Shown: positions 14,700 through 50,576 of the stretch, piece by piece
Position numbering within the stretch: position 1 is the stretch's first letter
Layout of the letters: every line of letters begins with the position of its first letter
NCBI GenBank assembly: GCA_020891255.1
Contig: BQFW01000009.1
Coordinates: forward strand, 1,302,001-1,366,000
DNA from: Entomortierella parvispora E1425
Lineage: Eukaryota > Fungi > Mortierellomycota
Length of the DNA stretch: 64,000 nucleotides
Reading direction: 5' to 3'
Made by a program: the position numbers and the translations under genes
The notes under the pieces: model-generated
What the model was told of the DNA's origin: nothing
What the model saw: the letters and a program-made list of their open reading frames with translations, nothing else
Databases searched by the model: none

Positions 14700-14878
14700 G
14701 TGAGAGCGGTCATTGATGTCTCCTGTCCAGTGGATTGGTGATGAACGATGAAGAAAGAAGAAGGAAGACAACGCGCTGCGGAAGTACTGCAGCGTTTAAA
14801 AAAGAGAGCGAGCAACACAGCCGCATGGTGCACGGTGCACTCCTTTGACACGGTGCTGTGCGCCACCAAAACGAGAGG

Positions 14879-14887
14879 ACAGAACTT
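14879..14887. repeat. Target-site duplication ACAGAACTT (left; right copy 22487-22495)
   Basis: Perfect 9-bp direct repeat bracketing the TIRs. It can also be read as TG..CA termini with a 7-bp TSD (CAGAACT). Confidence 0.9.
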
Positions 14888-15909
14888 GAAGCTCTGAACC
14901 CAGCCCCTCTTTGCTCACTCCTTCACTTCAGAGGGGCTGGGCGCAAATCTCACCCTTTCCTATGGATGACCCAAAATAATTTTTTCGTCCAAAAAAGGAA
15001 AAAAAATTCTCTGATAAATAGTGTAATTTAAAAACTTTAAATAAATTCACTCTAATAATAATAAAATAGTGAGAGTAATGCCAGCCATGCAGCCATGCCA
15101 TCGCTCGTCGCCCGGCTTGAATGGGGTTAATTTCTTCCATTTTTTCATTTTCAATGCCACCACTTTCTTTCATAAACCCCGCGTTCCGATCTTGCATTCA
15201 GCTCCTGCCACCTCTTCTTTATACCCTTCATCTGATTAAATGACAAAGATGGCAAGCAAAAAGACCAATCGAGCAGAGGTGAGGAGACGCGTCTCGGGTG
15301 TCCATGATGCTCAGAGTCGCCCACGCGTCCATCTGCTCTATTTTTCTTCATCTCTTCATATTTTCTGTTGTAGTCATGATGCTCTTAGCAAATCTGATCA
15401 AGATATCCCGGGAACGCCGAGAAGATCGCGTAGCACCAAGGTGAGTAGCTTGATGTGGTGCCTGGTGGCCTCTTCCTGGTGTGGCCTCTTCTAACTCTGT
15501 GATTTACAATAGGGTGAGGGACGATTTCGTCTTGATTCCCCAGGTGCTCCTCCGCGAACCCCGCAAACAACACAAACCCCACGAGCACCACGAGCACCAC
15601 GAACTCCACGAACCCCGCGCACCTCACAAACCTTACAAACGCCAAGATTCATACAGTCACCAATTGTGGCCAACCAAGTATGAAAAAAATCGTTAAAAAA
15701 TATGTGCTGCTCGCGTTTTCTTTTCTAACAGATGTATCCACCTCCTCCCATTCATATCGATTAGGGAACTACCAATGGTTCTGGTGCTACCGATATGGCC
15801 CAACCTTTACCCTTTGTCATGGAGGCACAGGCTCTTTCTCCGACTTCTCAGGCTGCGTACATTGGAGGATCAACGCAATTCAACATTGGAAAAAATTCGA
15901 CGCCACCCA
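14888..15909. repeat. Left terminal inverted repeat
   Basis: Reverse complement of 21466-22486. The ORF track gives mirror-image ORFs (14928-15197/22177-22446, 15481-15696/21679-21894). The only difference I found is A5 versus A4 at ~15258. Confidence 0.95.
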
Positions 15910-18157
15910 TCACTGGAGAAGAACCGCCACGACTCAATGTTGGAGAGAATTTGACGCGATCCAATGTTGGAGAAGAATCGCCGCGACCCAGCAATGCGTC
16001 GGAGGAGTTGACGTTCGATCCTTTCTGTGATAACACTGATGGAGAACCAATCATGACGTGGGGTTCTGATAACTATTATGTAAGAACCCCTTTGAGGAAA
16101 AAGTGGTCATCGATGCAGCCATCGTCATCAGCTCCTTCTTCACCCGCCAATTCTGTCGGCTCTCCGTTGCAGTCATTCTCGTCACCATCAAATGCGGTTC
16201 TTAGCCAACCTTTACCGTTTATACAAAAAAGCGATGAACGCGAAGACGAGAGTGATGTCCAGGTAAGTCGAGTTTAATTATGAAATGGCGATGTTCTGGA
16301 CTTGCATTAACTCTCACATTAAAATGCATATATGTCTGTAATCTTCATACTGCAGGATCCATTATGTAAAGAGGCTATTCAAGCTTGCCGAAAGCGTTTT
16401 CATCACTCACCAAAGGAGGAGCAGCTTCGTGTTGTCAAACATATATACAACAAGCAGGATTGCTTACTGCTTGCGCCCTGCGGGTGGGGAAAAACACTTG
16501 TATTTTCTCTGCCAATGGTGATGTGGAAGGACAAGATTACGGTCGTCATTTCGCCGTTGATTGCCCTGATGCAGGATCAGATAAAGGTATGCCAGCATAC
16601 AATATACCAGTCTAACAGGTATACTTTTTTCTAACATATCGCGCAATGCGACCCTGTGTTAATACTCTAGAAACTCAAAGAAAAGGATGTCACTTGTTTG
16701 CTACTCTCGACCTACAACGGCAATCGAGTTAACGACAGTGACATTAAATTAGTTAAGGAGGGACATTACAGAGCTGTGTTCATGTCGCCAGAAGTCATTT
16801 TCGGGAAAGGATCTACTGCATGCAAGGTTCAGGACCTTTGGAACAATAAGTATTGGAAAAGTCAACTATGCTCCATCGTCGTAGATGAAGTCCACTGTGT
16901 AGATAAATGGAAAGATTTTCGGCCGTATTATTCGCAAATTGGATCATTGCGTGGTAAGGTACCTGGGGTGCCGATCGTAGGCCTGACTGCAACCCTCCCA
17001 CCCGATTCGCTCCAGGAAATCAAGAATAGCGTCTTTCTCGCCTCGTCCACCGTTCATGTCATTCGTGTGGATGACATTCGTGATAACATCCAGCTCGAAG
17101 TTCATACCTTTTCACTAAGGAATCGAGTCAGACAACTGGCGAAGTTGCTGGACAATACAAAGACGATTGTCTATTTTGACAGCATCGCACTTCTCAGAGA
17201 TGTACAGGACAAGTTAAGGCCATTGAGGCCTGATCTGCGAATGGACGCATTTTTCTCAACCCGCCTTAGTTCTTCCAAGGATAAAGTCCTGCTCAAGTTC
17301 ATTAATAGCGAGATTGATGTCCTGTTGGCTACTGATGCCTGCGGCATGGGATGCGATATCTCAGATGTTATCACTGTGTTCCAATATGAGTAAGTTGAAA
17401 CGTAACTAAGGTTGGACAATGCGGATGAAATGAGAGACGATCTTACTTACTTCAAGATATTTTCAATGATATGAAGTCTGCCTCACGATTTGACGAGTCT
17501 TGTGCAGAGGTTCGGTCGAGCAGCGAGGGGTCCTGGAACTAAAGGCTTTGGGATCCTCTTGGCGCCTCCAACTACCAGCAGGAAATACAACAAGAGACCT
17601 GACATCTTAAATTTCGTTGCCCCCCAATTGACAAGGACAAGGACAAGGAAAAGGACAAGGAAAAGGACAAGGACAACAGTCGGAGGAAATGTCGGTGGCA
17701 TGTGGTGGATGAATATCTAGGGAACAAAATATCCTCTCGTACCAAATGTTGTGATGTATGTCTCGGTGAGTCTTGTCGCCGCAAGACGACCGAACTTACT
17801 GGTCAAATTGGGCCCGAACTGACTATACCAAAGGGGAAGAGCGCGGACAAAGATCAGGATGTAGGGAGGAACAGGTTATTGGAGTGGAGGAAGAACGAGT
17901 GCAAAAAATGGACAGGAGAAGAAGTGTCCTTCGTGGACTTCGAGCTTTGCGTTTTGCCCGATAAAGTACTCGCAAGGTTGTGCTACAAGCTCTTTGCGGC
18001 CACCACTACTGAAATGGTGAGGTTGATAGCTGACAGCTGTGATTTTGTGCCAGTGGATTGCGATCATTTTGAAATGATCGCTGAGGTTGTGGCGAAAGCC
18101 CTGGGCGAGATAGAAAGTACGAAAAATGATCAAAATTCCTTGGTAGTCGAAGAATAG
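15240..18157 (+). CDS. Transposon RecQ-like SF2 helicase (frameshifted); leader exons lie inside the left TIR
   Basis: Motif I APCGWGKT, Ia VISPLIALMQDQ, II DEVH, III LTAT, V ATDACGMGCD, VI QRFGRAAR and Zn-binding CRWH...CCDVC. Exons 15765-16262, 16356-16586, 16671-17389 and 17477 onward join in phase. Frameshift at the C6 run ~17620. Confidence 0.88.
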
Positions 18158-18323
18158 CCCATCAATTGACCGAGCCAAGATGACAAGGAGATGGAGTCAC
18201 TGCTTGCATCTGATGACCCTGCACAACCAAACATTTACAGCCGGCCGGGCCATTTAACATCGCACGAGCCCAGGTCCCATTCATTCATTCTTCTTTAGTT
18301 AGTATTATTATTGTCATAAAATA

Positions 18324-21300
18324 TCATTCAGCTACAACATGGTCGTTGGCCTCGACTTCCTCCATATCCACAGTATCGTAGCTATCGCTTTTTCTGAGAA
18401 AACATGCTATAGCACTCTCTGCCATTTTGTGCGCGCCAACAGTTTGAAGGTCAACTACCACGGATGGAGAAGGCCGAGTGTCTTGCTTGGATGCCCAAAG
18501 GATTCCACAGAACTGGAGATTGTCTCTGACAAGCTCAACATCCTCTTTCGTGGATGGTTTTTTGTGAGCAGTGCTGTTGTACTTGGTTTCTATCTCCCGT
18601 TCGAAATTACGTGCAATGGTTTGAAATATCTCGACGTTTGTTGAGATTTGTTCGCGAAGATAGTCCCAGCTTGCGTTTGGCCCTTTCGCTGCATGAGTGG
18701 CTTTGAGGAGGAAGTTGATGATTTCTTGGTACATGTCCGTTGGCATCCATGCTTGAGGAATGCCTTTAGGGTTCACCAGCATGCTTGAAAGGACCCTGTG
18801 TTCCCATTCACGCGTCCACAGGTGGCGCATGCCGTGGAGAAAATCGTAGTAGCTCAAGGGCATATTTGGAATTGCCTCCGCCGTGCATCATCAATGCCAC
18901 GGTTGGTAGCACACATCTTATCCGCCCAAGATCGCCAGCCTTAATAGCAGCAGAGAGTTCGATGAAAACGATCATGTCTCGGAGGAAGAGAAGAGCATTG
19001 ATATCTGCTGGAGTGCAGGGCCGGCCATTGAGCAAGGGATTGGCATGCTGCAGACTAGCTATGGCGTAAATGACAAGATCAACGAATCTTGTCATGTCAG
19101 ACTCCACTGAGGTATGAAGATCTTCCCAGAGTACCATTGACATTGCGTCGAAAACAATCTTCAGCAGTTCACTGGTTGGCTTGTACTCCGGTTTATCCGT
19201 GTTAAAGCCTTTACTGGCCAATAGGGAAATGAATGATGCAAGTGAGCCTGGGGTATTGGCATCGGCGCCAAGATGTGTCTTGTAGATCGTGGAGCAAAGT
19301 GTCATTTGGAGATGGAAGAGCTGAAACGTAGGATGTACCCAACCAAGACTGCCGAATGGATCCGACTCAACCATGCGGTGTACCTTGAGAGATAAAAGTC
19401 TAGAGACAGTCATCTGATCACCGGCCACTATGATGTCCCTGGTGGTCTTGCTGAACCATTCATCGCTTAAGCCGAGATCTATCTTTGTTATGTTTTCCAG
19501 CACTGCGAGATTTCCGGCAATAGTCGACTCATCGATCTTCATGGTTGGCAATGGAAAAGTTTTCGTCTTAACAACCTTCAGTACGTCAATGGCCGGCATG
19601 GGAATCACGCAAACACTGGGTGATCGAGGCAAAAACTGCGAAATGGCAGTCGACAGATGTGTGCGGCAGGCAGCCCTAGTCATGGTGCGGTCGGTGCTTG
19701 TGGGGAAAAAAATGCTGGCGCTTGGCTCTGGCCTGTCCACTCTGAAGCAAACCATTGGGGATGATCGAGGTATTTCAGCACTCCTGGAGCTCCCGAGATT
19801 TGAGCTGTCGGGAATCAGAATCACGGTAGCAGCTGTGCCGTTGTCGAACGTGTCTCTTTTTCCTACTCTCTGGTGATGGTGCCTTGTGGCAATGTTGATG
19901 TTGTCGTATACAATGTAAAAGTCGTTGTTGAGGACTGCCACCTTCACCCTCTCCTGTGCGTCTTTGGTCAAGGCCTTCAATGCCCTGTGAATCTGATCAT
20001 ATGACACGCAAAGTCCAAGAGCCGACAAAGTCTCTAAAACTCGTCTGGGAGCTCCCAGGCAGTGAAGATAGATGCCCATTACCATCTGAAAAGCATTGCA
20101 TTGCTGGGATCTCAAGAACATGAGCATAGCAGAGATGCAGCCACGAACAGAGCTGGGTTTTCGACCGCGCCTGCGAGCAGGTGTAGCGCTTCCCACAGTT
20201 TCTTCATCATTGTTGCCGATGTTGTCACTGCCGTTGTTGACGGTGTTATCGCCGTTGCTGTCGATGTCGTTGTCGCCGCTATTGTCGCTGTTGTCGCTGT
20301 TGCTCTCGGTGTCGTTCTCACTGTCGTTGCCGTTGTTGTTGCCTTCGTTTACTCTGGTGCTACCATCGCCACTGTTCGTACCATTTCCCTTGCTAAGCAT
20401 GCCGTCCAAAAGTCGTGTCAAAAAAGAAGCTTCGCCGGCGTAAGAGTCGAGAAACCCGTTCCTGAGGATCTTATCGATATTTTCCTCCGACATTCTATTG
20501 TGCGGGAATCGGTAGGCTGGGTGTGGGCCATCGTCACCTACGACGCCGTTCTTGAGGCGATCAAGCTCCCGTTTAGTCCTTGAGACAACGACGTCTACAG
20601 CGCTGTTCACAAATGGGGCATCCCATTCTTTGATCTTGCGTAACTTTTGGCTCCAAATTTTGATAACGCGACGAGGACCGTCTTTGTGATAGAATTGATG
20701 AGTCCAGCGCTTGATGTTTTCATCTTGAGAGTTAAACAGCTTCTCGAAGAAGGCGGGAAGTGAAAGCTGTTGTTCCCTGATGTAGTTAAGAATCATTGCA
20801 ACTTTGTGGGTAGAGGAATGCTAAAAAGAAAAATAATTGTTAGACGCCTGTGGGAGTGACATATTGCTGGTTTCTTTGGACAACCGGTCTTCACATACAT
20901 GCGGCTTCCTTGTTGATCCGGGCATTCGATCCTCTCCATTGGTCGCTCTGAGTGTGGGGGGAATCGGGCATGCACATCTATACGTAATTCGTAATTCACT
21001 TGAGAGGTAATTCATAAATTACGATAAGGATGTTTTCGAAACCATGTGCTGAATTTACCTGCAGTGTCGATGAGTTGAACTGCTCCTCCATGTCGGCCGT
21101 TAAAGTCCTAATCCTATCACTGAATTTCACTGCATGTTAGAAATTTGCGTAAACCTGGGGGCAACTAAAGTTGCGACAGGGTAGGCAGGTTGGGGTATCT
21201 CATGCTTACGCGAACTGAGGGGTGCTCAGATTCCTAGATCGTCGCGAGTTTTTTCTTGTGGGGGTCCTCATGTAATCGTTCCCAGAAACCCATATCATCG

Positions 21301-22134
21301 GCGTCTCTGTTCGATTACTTCCTAATCTCCGAAGCCAGAATGGGCTATCGAATGGCTCTCCATCAGTGTTGTCACAGAAAGGATCGAGCAGAGACTCCTC
21401 TGACGCATGCTTGGGTCGCGGTGATTCATCTCCAATGCTGGGTCGCGGCGACTCTTTTCCAATGTTGGGTGGCGTCGAATTTTTTCCAATGTTGAATTGC
21501 GTTGATCCTCCAATGTACGCAGCCTGAGAAGTCGGAGAAAGAGCCTGTGCCTCCATGACAAAGGGTAAAGGTTGGGCCATATCGGTAGCACCAGAACCAT
21601 TGGTAGTTCCCTAATCGATATGAATGGGAGGAGGTGGATACATCTGTTAGAAAAGAAAACGCGAGCAGCACATATTTTTTAACGATTTTTTTCATACTTG
21701 GTTGGCCACAATTGGTGACTGTATGAATCTTGGCGTTTGTAAGGTTTGTGAGGTGCGCGGGGTTCGTGGAGTTCGTGGTGCTCGTGGTGCTCGTGGGGTT
21801 TGTGTTGTTTGCGGGGTTCGCGGAGGAGCACCTGGGGAATCAAGACGAAATCGTCCCTCACCCTATTGTAAATCACAGAGTTAGAAGAGGCCACACCAGG
21901 AAGAGGCCACCAGGCACCACATCAAGCTACTCACCTTGGTGCTACGCGATCTTCTCGGCGTTCCCGGGATATCTTGATCAGATTTGCTAAGAGCATCATG
22001 ACTACAACAGAAAATATGAAGAGATGAAGAAAAATAGAGCAGATGGACGCGTGGGCGACTCTGAGCATCATGGACACCCGAGACGCGTCTCCTCACCTCT
22101 GCTCGATTGGTCTTTTGCTTGCCATCTTTGTCAT
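18324..22134 (-). CDS. DUF6589/Academ-type DDE transposase (frameshifted); leader exons lie inside the right TIR
   Basis: FLRSQQCNAFQMVMGIYL, VYDNINI, AGDQMT, FHLQM, KAGDLGR, YALELL, LVNPKG and DMYQEIIN motifs. +1 frameshift at the A4 run 18840-18843. Upstream exons 22097-22134, 21935-22001, 21698-21862, 21210-21610 and 21059-21119 splice in phase to 20820. Confidence 0.85.
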
Positions 22135-22486
22135 TTAATCAGATGAAGGGTATAAAGAAGAGGTGGCAGGAGCTGAATGCAAGATCGGAACGCGGGGTTT
22201 ATGAAAGAAAGTGGTGGCATTGAAAATGAAAAAATGGAAGAAATTAACCCCATTCAAGCCGGGCGACGAGCGATGGCATGGCTGCATGGCTGGCATTACT
22301 CTCACTATTTTATTATTATTAGAGTGAATTTATTTAAAGTTTTTAAATTACACTATTTATCAGAGAATTTTTTTTCCTTTTTTGGACGAAAAAATTATTT
22401 TGGGTCATCCATAGGAAAGGGTGAGATTTGCGCCCAGCCCCTCTGAAGTGAAGGAGTGAGCAAAGAGGGGCTGGGTTCAGAGCTTC
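21466..22486. repeat. Right terminal inverted repeat
   Basis: Reverse complement of 14888-15909. Confidence 0.95.
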
Positions 22487-24136
22487 ACAGAACTTTAAAG
22501 TGTTTCCCTTTGCATGCTCATGTTCGACGACCCTCATGCATGCCTCCATTCCTTGACCATTCTTCTCCTTCTCGTTTGCATCCATTCATTCATCCAGCAC
22601 AATGTCGACTGTCCAGTAAAGCACGCATGCCGTCCTGCTCCTCACCATCGACACCACCTAGAATGAACGCGAGGCAATTCCACAATAATTCCCTTCCTCA
22701 TACTCATAACACAAAGTTCAAAAGGCGGATCTTATTATTGTTGAAATTGATGGCTACTTCTACAAGCTGATAATAAAAAGACAGAAAAAGAAGGCGCTGC
22801 GAAAAAGCAATGAAGGTCCCAAAGGTCTTCAAAAGTCCTTTTCTGCAACCATGTTCGAAAATGAGAAAAGAGAAAGAGAAAGGTTTTTTTTTGGTGTTTA
22901 CAAGCTGCTACCCGCAGGCGTGCGCAACTTTAAAGTTCCCTAGGAGCTCATGAGCACTCCTCGCAGGGTAATGGATGCGCCTTTCGGCTACTCACATCCA
23001 CCCGCCGACATGTCTTTTTCCTTTATTCCCCAGCATGCCCAGCACACACTACCCGCCGCTCAATGCGACTGATAAGCAAAATCCATGATAAGTCAAGGGT
23101 GCGACCTACAAGGGCTAATGACGTTTTCCAAGATACCCAACTTCATGAAGATCGAGTACCGCAGACAGAGTGACAAGAGTAGAAGCCCCCGCGTCACGAA
23201 AATTGCGAGTAATGGTGAAGGACCCACTGAGGCGGTAAAAAGATTGCATCCTTTCCATCCTCGGGAGCGTCGGCGACTGAGGAGAAAAAGAAAGAGGGGG
23301 AAAGGTCTGGTATTTATACCTGACCTCCCACTAAGTGACTGGTCTGGCCGAGGTGGACGGGGGGTTGTGCAAACGATGCCTTTTTCGTTGCTGCTGACAT
23401 GGTTGCACAAAATGTTCTCGTCACGAAGCGTTTTTAAGAGACGAGCCATTTCATTTTGAAAAAAGTCCAGGCAGACTGCCGTTGGTCACGGGGTCGACGT
23501 CGACGATGAGATGAACATAGGAGTGACCACGATGAAATGTCATTGCCTCTTGACCATGAAGGAGAAAAGTGGAGATCACCATGTATCTCGTTGAATTTTG
23601 ATCTTTTTTTTTTTTTTTTTTGAATGTAATATTTCGCGTCAATTGCCTGTTCAAGTCGGCTTTCTGCACACTTCCAGTCGTTCAATCACAGTGTATTAGC
23701 CCTGCCTCTTCTCAGAGAGCAAGAGATGCTGGCCTCCTGCTCCACTCGATAACTGAGACTGGTCAGGTAGGCCCATTTCTCCATGGCCATGGCTGCTTGT
23801 CAATTGGCCTTCAATTCCACCATCATATCGTCTTCATCCGAGCCATGCCTCTTTCCAGTGCCTCAGTGCTAGTCGTGCGTCCCCTACACGACTCGTCATG
23901 AGAATCCTCTATCTAACCTCGAGATCAATTGCACTTTCTCTCGGAGAGAGGCGTCCTATGTACGTCTTTCGTCTTTTCCGCTCGTGTTCAGTTCGCATTC
24001 ATGTAGCCAGCACCATCTACGAGCTCTACTAAGTACTAATCAGATCAATATGTTGCATGTGGGCGATTCGATTGGACTGTAACTCTTCTACCTCCTAGTG
24101 CATGGTGTTTGGAAAGCTCCCTTTTTATTATTATTA

Positions 24137-47668: not shown

Positions 47669-50576
47669 ATGTTTGTCTACAAGCGAGGTACGACAGACGT
47701 GCCACTGCGCTGCAACCCTCTTGTTTTGTTCATTTGGCATTTGTCGCCACCATCTTTTGTGCATCGTATCGAGTCCATGTGCGCTAACCATTCACTGCCT
47801 GCTTTTCCCCTTCTGTACCTTGAACCCATCCTTCTGATTGGAACCTCCTTCCTCGACAAATAGATGGTAAGAAGCTGCGTTACTTTTGCCTGAAATGTAC
47901 AATGCCGCATGTAAAATGCAGAGCTGTGCACAGACTGATTCATATGCATTTCATTCTTGTTTTCTCATTTCAGGACGCAAGGAGCGTGTTGCCTTTGACA
48001 AGATTACGGCCAGAATCGTCAAGCTGTGCTATGGCCTCGACATGAACTTTGTCGACCCAGTCCAGGTCACCCAGAAGGTGCGTCCCGTTCACTTGACCTC
48101 CTTTTTTGTTTTTGCGGGTTGCCAGGACTGTTCCCCCCTGTCGGTGATTGGAACTACCCTGTTCTGTGGCTTTTTTTTTTCTTTTTCTTTTTCTTTTTTT
48201 TTCTCTTTTGCCTGATCCAGAAAACTGACATGTGTTTTTTTCGTTGTATTGAAACACGTCCTTTAGGTCATCTCAGGTGTCTACCATGGAGTCAGCACCG
48301 TCGAGCTCGATAACCTCGCTGCCGAAACTGTACGTTTGCACTCTTTAATGCCATACTGACAGATCATAAGATCGAAACTAATCAATTGATCTGCATTTGA
48401 ACCGACTTAGGCTGCCTACATGACCACCAAGCACCCCGACTACGCCATCCTCGCTGCCCGTATTGCTGTCTCGAACGTCCACAAGGAGACCAAGAAGGTC
48501 TTCTCTCAGGTCATTGAGGATCTCTACACTTATATCAACCCCAAGACCGGCAAGAACGCCTCCATGATCTCCGAGAAGACTTACCAGAGCGTCATGAAGA
48601 ACCAGGATCGCCTCAACTCTGCCATTATCTACGATCGCGATTTCAACTACAACTACTTTGGCTTCAAGACCCTCGAGCGCTCATATCTTCTCCGTATCGA
48701 TGGCCGTGTTGCAGAGAGACCCCAGCACATGTTGATGCGTGTTTCTGTCGGTATCCACGGCGACGACGTCGAGAAGGCTATTGAGACCTACAACCTCATG
48801 TCTGAGAAGTTCTTCACCCACGCCTCGCCCACCCTCTTCAATGCCGGAACCCCCAGACCCCAGATGTCATCTTGCTTCTTGTTGACCATGAAGGACGACT
48901 CGATCGAGGGCATTTACGATACCCTCAAGACCTGTGCCATGATCTCCAAGACTGCTGGAGGTATCGGTCTCAACATTCACAACATCCGTGCCTCGGGCTC
49001 CTATATTTCCGGAACGAACGGATACTCGAACGGTCTCATCCCCATGCTCCGCGTCTACAACAACACTGCTCGCTATGTCGATCAGGGTGGCAACAAGCGC
49101 CCTGGTGCGTTCGCCATGTACCTTGAGCCCTGGCACGCGGATGTGTTCGAGTTCTTGGATCTTCGCAAGAACACTGGAAAGGAGGAGAGCCGTGCCCGCG
49201 ATCTGTTCTATGCCCTTTGGATTCCCGATCTATTCATGAAGCGTATTGAAGAGAACGGCGACTGGAGCTTGTTCTGCCCTGCTGAGGCCCCCGGTCTCCA
49301 GGATGTTTGGGGCGAGGAGTTTGAGGCCCTTTACGCCAAGTACGAGAGCGAGGGTCGTGCCCGCAAGACCATCAAGGCCCAAAAGCTTTGGTATGCCATT
49401 CTTGAGGCCCAGACCGAGACTGGAACCCCTTACATGTTGTACAAGGATGCCTGCAACCGCAAGTCCAACCAGCAGAACTTGGGAACCATCAAGTGTAGTA
49501 ACTTGTGCACAGAGATTGTCGAGTACAGCAGTCCCGAAGAGGTTGCCGTTTGCAACTTGGCCAGTATTGCTCTCCCTACCTTTGTCAACAACCAGGTCTA
49601 CGATTTCAAGCTCCTTCACAAGATTACCAAGGTTGTCACTCGCAACTTGAACAAGATTATTGACGAGAACTACTACCCCGTTCCCGAGGCCGAATACTCC
49701 AACAAGCGTCATCGCCCCGTTGGTGTCGGTGTACAGGGTCTTGCCGATGCCTTCATCAAGATGCGCATGCCATTCGATTCGCCCGAGGCTCGCAAGCTCA
49801 ACTTGGAAATCTTTGAGACCATTTACCACGCTGCCCTCGAGGCTTCTTGCGAGATGGCCCAGGAGGAAGGCAAGTACGAGACATATGAGGGATCCCCTGT
49901 TTCCAAGGGAATTCTTCAGCCCGATATGTGGGGTGTGACCCCCACTGACCTCTGGGACTGGGATACTCTCCGTGCCTCCATTGCCAAGCACGGTGTCCGT
50001 AACTCGCTCTTGGTCGCCCCCATGCCTACCGCCTCTACCTCTCAGATCCTCGGTTTCAACGAGTGCTTTGAGCCTTATACCTCGAACATCTATACCCGTC
50101 GTGTCTTGGCTGGCGAGTTCCAGATTGTGAACCCCTGGATGTTGAAGGATCTTGTCGAGATGGGACTCTGGAACGATCAGCTCAAGAACCGTATTATTTC
50201 CGAGAATGGATCCATCCAGCGTATTCCCGGTATCCCTGACGATTTGAAGGCACTTTACAAGACTACCTGGGAGATCTCTCAAAAGGTCGTTATTGACTTG
50301 GCTGCCGACCGTGGTGCATTTATTGATCAGTCCCAGTCCATGAACATTCACTTGGCCGATGTCAACTATGGCAAGCTCACATCCATGGCTTTCTATGGTT
50401 GGAAGCGTGGTCTTAAGACCGGCATGTACTACCTCCGTACCCGCCCTGCCGTGGATGCCATCAAGTTCACTGTGGACCAGTTGTCGATTAACCGCGAGGC
50501 ACAAGAGGAGGCTAACCAGGCCGCCATGATGTGCTCAATCGATAACAAGGATGCCTGCATGAGCTGCAGTGGATAG
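47669..50576 (+). CDS. RNR1: Ribonucleoside-diphosphate reductase large subunit (class Ia)
   Basis: ATP cone ([18 protein letters not shown]), [66 protein letters not shown] and C-terminal CxxC; exon 1 47669-47687, micro-exon 47864-47866. Confidence 0.98.

Follow-up and report, generated by a model that had tools for sequence, protein, structure and literature searches.

Why should a DNA transposon carry terminal inverted repeats (TIRs) a kilobase long, and where do its genes begin? Both questions are raised by an AcademH-like element that spans positions 14888-22486 (7,599 bp) of the 64,000-nt stretch of DNA analysed here (hereafter the window: Entomortierella parvispora E1425, assembly GCA_020891255.1, contig BQFW01000009.1, positions 1,302,001 to 1,366,000 of the forward strand), and in which an earlier note, made from the sequence alone, had read coding exons of two different proteins within the TIRs. 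The answer that we favour, with a probability of roughly three in four for the explanation as a whole, is that the ~1.02-kb TIRs would be duplicated gene heads, one for a helicase and one for a transposase, of a recently active cut-and-paste transposon.

Read from the outside in, each TIR would then comprise a terminal motif of ~55 nt, an A/T-rich and poorly conserved upstream region (the presumed promoter), a transcription start, a short 5' untranslated region (5' UTR), an ATG and the first exons. Transcription would run inwards from both ends, on the left into a 799-aa RecQ-like helicase of superfamily 2 (SF2) and on the right into a 1,101-aa transposase of the DUF6589 family. Both mRNAs would share promoter and 5' UTR, and both proteins would begin with the same 138-aa leader, which is basic, Ser/Thr-Pro-rich and predicted to be disordered. 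The ~60 aa after the leader would be diverged copies of one ancestral sequence, and repeated copying of one arm onto the other would keep the TIRs identical.

Coding exons in the two arms

The limits of the element are set at 14888 and 22486 because its 22-nt end, GAAGCTCTGAACCCAGCCCCTC, occurs in the window only at 14888-14909 (plus strand) and 22465-22486 (minus strand). Directly outside lie two identical copies of a 9-bp target-site duplication, ACAGAACTT, at 14879-14887 and 22487-22495. The left TIR (14888-15909, plus strand) and its mirror on the right (21466-22486, minus strand), which heads the transposase gene, measure 1,021 nt and are identical except for one extra A on the left (A5 at 15258-15262, as against A4). 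The left TIR holds the terminal motif, the upstream region, an ATG, helicase exons 1-3 and the first 145 nt of exon 4, the ATG being 353 nt inside the element end. The first mismatch between the arms is found at 15910/21465; past this edge an alignment can be followed for ~200 nt more, broken by indels whose lengths (27 and 51 nt) are multiples of three.

On the right arm (minus strand), the transposase gene begins with exon 1 (22097-22134, 38 nt, ATG at 22134-22132), followed within the TIR by exon 2 (21935-22001, 67 nt) and exon 3 (21698-21862, 165 nt). Exon 4 (21210-21610, 401 nt) crosses the boundary, 21610-21466 belonging to the TIR and 21465-21210 being transposase-specific. The left arm (plus strand) mirrors this order with helicase exon 1 (15240-15278, from the ATG and mirroring 22134-22097; 39 nt here, 38 nt in sister copies), exon 2 (15374-15440, 67 nt, in the TIR, with GT-AG borders and the same 67 nt, ungapped, in three families), exon 3 (15513-15677, 165 nt, in the TIR, with 9-nt repeats) and exon 4 (15765-16262), of which 15765-15909 is TIR sequence common to both arms and 15910-16262 is helicase-specific. 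All exon coordinates given in the earlier note have GT..AG borders, its right-arm model is a single open frame that yields exactly the peptide quoted there, and several introns have the branch sites it mentioned (CTAAC or TTAAC). Its mirror exons are likewise in phase from exon 2 into the exon that begins at 16356, exon 1 being shifted by the extra A. The proposal that both genes draw on the same TIR-borne upstream sequence agrees with the repeats, which are identical there and in which both genes begin.

Intact products of the two genes are found among deposited proteins as helicase P0069 and transposase P0066. Their residues 1-138 are the same, and over 219 residues they have 79% identity; beyond residue 138 they remain alignable to about residue 200, with gaps of 9 and 17 codons. 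The leader, predicted earlier as ~140 identical and disordered residues on both proteins, is thus present as 138 identical residues, and disorder is indicated by a pLDDT of ~24 over residues 1-272 (AlphaFold) and by the charge-hydropathy test; in the present copy left exon 1 is frameshifted. It carries a net charge of +10, ten S/T-P sites and tandem repeats with periods of 9, 9 and 27 nt. In a database of 5.8 billion proteins, it was detected only in helicases and transposases of this element. A protein-database search with left exon 4 by itself gave no match, probably owing to the length filter and to clustering. The strain annotation (AUGUSTUS with transcripts) places it on several helicase and transposase models, and the two proteins with identical N-termini already stand in GenBank and UniProt as hypothetical proteins.

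Transcription of the TIR exons is seen in a 463-nt contig from sequencing run X2, in which 21700-21861, 21934-22001 and 22097-22182 are joined: exon 2 is connected on both sides, exon 3 is covered over 21700-21861, and the introns of 72 and 95 nt have been removed at the predicted GT..AG sites. The contig has the A4 form of exon 1 and reaches 48 nt upstream of the ATG (22135-22182, minus strand), and the transcription start is at or upstream of 22182. This 48-nt 5' UTR contains no other ATG, and a TAA immediately precedes the start codon. Depth in X2 is zero across introns 1 and 2 and across 22218-22365. Two checks proposed in the earlier note thereby have an answer: the RNA begins 48 nt or more before the TIR ATG, and the first two introns are spliced as predicted, in a contig that is specific to neither arm.

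Runs of the strain were located with an exon of the host gene RNR1 (48420-50576) as query, a query with the element having listed no RNA runs. X2 derives from the same sample as the assembly and was taken as an RNA library from its zero intron depth, an adapter remnant and the genome paper, which describes libraries of DNA (Illumina) and RNA (TruSeq; RNA-seq under DRA013164) and an annotation by AUGUSTUS with transcript sequences as input (PMC8759367). Separately, X2 contigs from several flanks, one of them the insertion site of copy L005, enter the TIR terminus for ~120 nt (22367-22486) and stop at an A/T-rich tract, which looks like read-through of host transcripts.

The leader across families and the start of the helicase

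The four-exon leader is present in five families, those of E. parvispora, P. verticillata, P. humilis, L. gamsii and a metagenome contig (L011), so that the recurrence that the earlier note suggested looking for is found in four further Mortierellaceae families, with the phase of exon 1 conserved. The family models were built by homology, as unguided enumeration of splice sites gave too many solutions and a stricter version gave none for P. humilis; two loci were left out, namely L006 (Mortierella alpina, nested or damaged) and L013 (no TIRs on the contig). TIRs measure 827 nt in P. verticillata (L001), 900 nt in P. humilis (L008) and about 1,200 nt in the right arm of L011; in L. gamsii (L007) some 920 nt separate the right terminus from the inner edge of the repeat, and the left arm is damaged. 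Exons 1, 2 and 3 are 38, 67 and 165 nt long in E. parvispora, 17, 67 and 90 nt in P. verticillata, 23, 67 and 108 nt in L011, and 23, 55 and 84 nt in P. humilis; exon 1 of L. gamsii has 23 nt.

Despite these differences in length, the leader splice sites are canonical in all five families and exon 1 always ends in phase 2. Exon 1 reads M..(N)KRQ(Q/L) across families (KRP in E. parvispora), exon 2 contains TPR[RK] or SKR, exon 3 ends in NQ, and exon 4 starts with an N.G..AE..L.L stretch followed by AEES..[ND]PF[WC] ([ND]PF[WCL] on helicase arms). The only conserved residues of exons 1 and 2 are two basic clusters, KR and, 16-19 residues later, PR[RK].R or SKR. Such spacing of basic clusters resembles that of a long-linker bipartite nuclear localization signal, and we infer that the clusters may act as a shared nuclear-import or regulatory tag. 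In these comparisons it is the architecture and the frame of the leader that are conserved, and not its sequence.

The frame also continues beyond the repeats. In four families a single frame remains open on both arms past the TIR boundary, over 60 to more than 200 codons, and on the helicase arms alone the leader frame stays open there for 105 to more than 200 codons. Over the first 54 codons inside the boundary, comparison of one arm with the other gives a dS of 0.56 and a dN/dS of 0.45, with 11, 11 and 19 differences at codon positions 1, 2 and 3. Further in, the helicase arms of other families retain SP.Q.FSSP[ST]N.[VI]LSQ and, right before the helicase core, an acidic tail. No Met outside the TIR precedes the [ND]PF motif on the helicase arms, so that the start codon of the helicase is expected within the TIR.

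Several observations weigh against two genes starting in the TIRs. The nature of X2 as an RNA run was deduced from its behaviour and from the genome paper, and the run is labelled 'DNA?'. Its contig lies wholly in TIR sequence common to both arms and to all copies, and can be assigned to no arm or copy; because of this, use of the TIR exons by the helicase arm is argued from comparison and annotation. The RNA support covers introns 1 and 2 and stops short of intron 3 onwards and of the junction 16262|16356, and translation of the leader is read from the DNA. Between families the leader is poorly conserved apart from short motifs, and nucleotide identity between families showed no clear difference between exons and introns; selection on the leader sequence itself would be weak, and we do not claim strong purifying selection. 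Published annotations of relatives, by the Broad and others, start one gene downstream of the TIR. Finally, the copy in the window, as assembled, has four frame-breaking homopolymer differences (15258-15262, 17620-17625, 18840-18843 and 20956-20961).

Could the transposase then be the only gene to use a TIR start, the left mirror exons being passive copies kept by TIR homogenization and the helicase starting internally, for instance at Met 187 or Met 206 of the 799-aa model? That the RNA contig can be assigned to neither arm leaves room for such a start, the Broad annotation of the P. verticillata helicase begins at an internal Met that lies outside the TIR, and left exon 1 is frameshifted here, the annotators having split the gene into products of 159 and 447 aa. 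However, the A5 run responsible for the frameshift is private to this copy (every other arm has A4) and is a homopolymer in a Nanopore assembly. At the three other full copies the annotated helicase gene begins at the mirror ATG, and the leader heads five of the six helicase models retrieved (P0067, P0068 with four accessions, P0069 and P0071). An internal start would also leave unexplained the open leader frame on the helicase arms of four families, and the [ND]PF motif and the region with a dN/dS of 0.45, both upstream of the first Met outside the TIR; in L. gamsii, moreover, the complete four-exon leader sits on the helicase arm. We therefore regard a transposase-only start as unlikely, and conclude that the helicase mRNA probably starts in its own TIR and is translated from the TIR ATG.

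Less probable still is that the TIR exons are transcribed and spliced but form a 5' UTR, with translation from the Met of MAQPLPF in exon 4 (still in the TIR) or from a later one, the leader frame being an artefact of low complexity. The context of the first ATG is indeed weak (T at -3), and the leader is of low complexity, poorly conserved and translated by prediction; but a second in-frame ATG follows three codons on in a strong context (AAGATGG), and the frame runs open from the first ATG into both enzymes in all five families although their exon lengths differ. The M..(N)KRQ start, the phase of exon 1, the 67-nt length of exon 2 and the TPR[RK] motif are conserved, and under the scanning model an upstream in-frame AUG without a stop is a start codon.

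Duplicated gene heads would also bear on existing gene models of relatives. In Podila verticillata, the Broad model of MVEG_10419 (L001 9769-10419) uses an ATG inside intron 2, as judged by homology with the introns seen in RNA, plus a 17-nt micro-exon. A four-exon model (17, 67 and 90 nt plus exon 4) would fit the family better, and the annotation of the helicase next to it probably lacks about 170 codons. More generally, annotators and gene predictors treat TIRs as non-coding and mis-start one gene; the annotations of P. verticillata and P. humilis appear to be affected.

Copies, enzymes and reading frames

Four full copies of the element are found in the genome: the one in the window (L003; GCA_020891255.1, BQFW01000009.1, there in reverse orientation) and L002, L004 and L005 on other contigs, each with its own 9-bp duplication. 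Together with the P. verticillata and P. humilis elements, six of six insertions are flanked by perfect 9-bp duplications. The four full copies show no substitutions and differ altogether by six 1-nt homopolymer indels, at 15258-15262, 15345, 16630, 17620-17625, 18840-18843 and 20956-20961. In addition, the 5' part of the transposase gene is annotated in at least nine near-identical copies, and word depth in Illumina DNA is ~1,627 in the TIR as against ~85 in the flank (~19x). An empty site is provided by a 641-nt contig of another strain (run X3), in which no more than ~22 nt separate the left flank, ending at 14885, from the right flank, beginning at 22523. Onto the element itself, runs X3-X6 (other strains or relatives) gave only low-complexity matches, and the element is absent from them. 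Copies without substitutions, their number of at least nine, their own duplications and the empty site in another strain argue that the family is young, was active recently and is probably still active. Run X3 is filed under the same organism label, and its flanks (14700-14885 and 22523-22789) differ by ~10% from the window, which suggests considerable divergence inside one label.

The genome was assembled from Nanopore reads and polished with Nanopolish and Pilon (PMC8759367). One-nucleotide differences confined to homopolymers are typical of unpolished Nanopore repeats, and for each of the four frameshift sites one or more sister copies have the open frame; a likely cause of the frameshifts is faulty polishing of a multi-copy repeat, real mutations being another possibility. 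The indels break the annotated genes differently from locus to locus, giving transposases of 934, 940 and 1,101 aa and helicases of 447, 653 and 799 aa. It may be asked whether collapsed repeats or gene prediction could have produced the long identical TIRs or the shared exons as well, given homopolymer errors in the repeats of this assembly and an Illumina contig that differs from it by two 1-nt indels, both in intron 1. Such an artefact is extremely improbable and already contradicted: the four copies lie at separate loci with their own 9-bp duplications, other species, assembled independently, and a metagenome contig show the same architecture, the TIR is spanned by Illumina DNA contigs, and a spliced RNA contig exists.

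Downstream of the leader, the helicase gene continues on the plus strand with exons 5-7 (16356-16586, 16671-17389 and 17477-18157, stop codon 18155-18157), which encode the RecQ-like SF2 core. In the present copy the frame is shifted by a C6 run at 17620-17625, where L002, with C7, stays open. The model based on L002 has 799 aa and 7 exons separated by six canonical introns (95, 72, 87, 93, 84 and 87 nt), and is letter-identical to the deposited EMPS_03645, which is P0069. Pfam assigns DEAD (3.5e-23) and Helicase_C (1.3e-16) to this protein, whose best solved relatives are WRN, RecQ and BLM.

The transposase gene continues on the minus strand with exon 5 (21059-21119, 61 nt), exon 6 (20899-20977) and exon 7 (18324-20820). 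The earlier note had spliced exon 5 directly to the acceptor at 20820; the acceptor was right, and the direct join from 21059 missed the exon at 20977-20899. The deposited protein P0001 uses exactly the five right-arm exons of that note. Exon 6 has 78 nt in L004 and L005, where it reads MCMPDSPTLRATNGEDRMPGSTRKPH and can be aligned with Podila homologues; in this copy (79 nt) and in L002 a C6 run (20956-20961) adds a base, and the gene predictor shifted a splice site to compensate. Exon 7 encodes the DUF6589 core (Pfam, 4.7e-91), in a frame truncated by a homopolymer at 18840-18843 (4 nt here, 3 nt in L005); the stretch 18808-20796 is 100% identical to EMPS_07069 of E. parvispora. The intact transposase is P0066, from L005, with 1,101 aa and 7 exons. 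The 3' ends of the two genes converge and are 166 nt apart.

Relatives of the transposase are fungal (Mortierellaceae and Basidiomycota), and in an alignment of 16 sequences D576, D738, E926 and E969 are invariant. AlphaFold models the core (about residues 510-1080) with confidence, and the top Foldseek matches are P element, Hermes, Transib and RAG1, with weak E-values (4e-3 to 0.03) and low TM-scores. A sequence search of the PDB with the transposase gave nothing relevant, and Pfam found DUF6589 only, with no MULE (MURA-like) or other transposase family. If this weak resemblance to DDE transposases reflects an RNase H-like catalytic core, D576, D738 and either E926 or E969 would be its candidate residues.

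Many Mortierellaceae homologues of the transposase are found on contigs 5.0-5.7 kb long, roughly the size of the element minus its TIRs, and several partial proteins begin at the TIR boundary; short-read assemblies seem to break exactly inside these TIR coding exons.

Terminal motif, probable arm homogenization and known parallels

If most of the TIR is gene, what remains for recognition? The conserved terminal motif (14888-14941, plus strand, mirrored at 22433-22486) consists of the 22-nt end GAAGCTCTGAACCCAGCCCCTC and a 12-bp internal palindrome. We compared the structures of these termini with those at L001 9595-9657 and L008 8724-8786. The 22-nt end is identical in the three species, though their transposases are only about 48-60% identical. 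Positions 12-23 from the end pair with positions 43-54 in a 12-bp stem with a spacer of 19-21 nt (z of -3.6 to -4.7 as single-stranded DNA), and in P. humilis the palindrome shows one compensatory change from T:A to A:T. The transposase or the helicase may recognize this palindromic terminus. In comparisons between families, the TIR is 81-85% identical over its first ~60 nt and about 45-55% over the remainder, where gaps are many. Recognition would accordingly seem to need only the terminal ~55 nt, the other ~1 kb consisting of the upstream region and the gene head. Gene content as the reason for the length of the TIRs, an idea of the earlier note, fits these data, as only the terminal ~60 nt are well conserved between families as DNA.

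The inner TIR boundary falls at different codons in different families, at about residue 80, 99, 138 or later. At this edge the comparison of the arms jumps from 0 differences to a dS of 0.56, as would be expected if one arm had been copied onto the other repeatedly, up to an end point that can move. A 27-nt (9-codon) tandem array (15914-15990 and 21411-21494), with one extra unit on the helicase arm, surrounds the boundary in E. parvispora; slippage or unequal exchange in this array may set the end of the homogenized tract.

It is more doubtful that the TIR is maintained as such for its effect on both genes. We can only tentatively suggest that it is a selected gene-head module that couples helicase and transposase, giving them one expression programme and one import or regulatory tag, and preventing them from drifting apart in regulation. 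The shared leader might also, as the earlier note proposed, bring about co-localization or hetero-assembly of the two proteins.

Several known systems share parts of this layout. MuDR of maize (Mutator superfamily) also makes 9-bp target-site duplications; its TIRs are about 0.2 kb long, its coding regions are not known to be TIR-encoded, and MURA and MURB are not known to have a common N-terminus. MuDR differs further by its transposase family and by a second protein that is not a helicase. Its genes mudrA and mudrB are convergent, with promoters in the two TIRs (PMC10401008). Two convergent genes with TIR-borne promoters offer a precedent for co-regulation through identical promoters, and the present arrangement would be that of an AcademH-like element in which a MuDR-like TIR promoter logic is extended into coding sequence. 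Poxvirus inverted terminal repeats and plastid inverted repeats are large repeats corrected against each other, with a boundary inside genes, arm products that share one end, and shifts of the boundary between lineages. They are genome-scale, and one of their products is usually a truncated by-product; here, by contrast, the repeat is the TIR of a transposon, and each product is an essential enzyme of the element itself. Galileo, Tm1 and other long-TIR or foldback transposons have kilobase-scale or structured TIRs (PMC4168063, PMC3169594). These and bacterial IS elements are comparable in having kilobase or structured TIRs and expression signals in terminal repeats; their TIRs, however, are non-coding arrays or the promoter of a single gene, and none is known to have spliced coding exons common to two proteins.

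As for AcademH itself, such elements make target-site duplications of 9 or 10 bp (PMC10045372) and are low-copy in fungi, including Mucoromycota (PMC10799480). They (Kojima 2020, Mob DNA 11:15, cited in both papers) also have genes for a DDE-type transposase and an SF2 helicase, and TIRs. The present element has a 9-bp duplication, a separate SF2 helicase gene adjoining the transposase gene, and TIRs of 1,021 nt (827-1,200 nt in relatives). AcademH-like is the right label from the duplication and the helicase partner, the transposase being placed in Pfam DUF6589 rather than by comparison with the Repbase Academ references. In the AcademH literature covered, outside which the primary paper of Kojima (2020) stands, no element is described whose two genes have their start codons and first exons in the TIRs, or whose two proteins share an N-terminus, and literature searches returned neither TIR-embedded start codons nor TIR-encoded exons common to two transposon proteins. 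The novelty claimed in the earlier note is borne out to that extent: a TIR-encoded N-terminus common to two proteins appears to be undescribed, TIR-borne promoters being known from MuDR.

Duplicated gene heads would supply a concrete reason for kilobase-long identical TIRs, most of which would here be gene and not binding site. By inverted duplication, two unrelated enzymes would have been given one promoter and one N-terminal tag, and a transposon would couple two proteins through its inverted repeats. The idea is testable in a culturable fungus, because the family looks active there: it has at least nine near-identical copies, and another strain lacks one of the insertions.

The convergent arrangement was not seen at the DUF6589 loci of Mycena and Rhodofomes. 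In Mycena olivaceomarginata (L009 9307-13412), a DEAD-helicase fragment lies upstream of the DUF6589 gene and points away from it; being upstream and divergent, this fragment shows that not all DUF6589 elements have the convergent, TIR-started layout. In Mortierella alpina (L006 1-8249 and 17128-22854), two DUF6589 elements lie directly side by side, with genes encoding HINT homing-endonuclease and Crinkler domains upstream.

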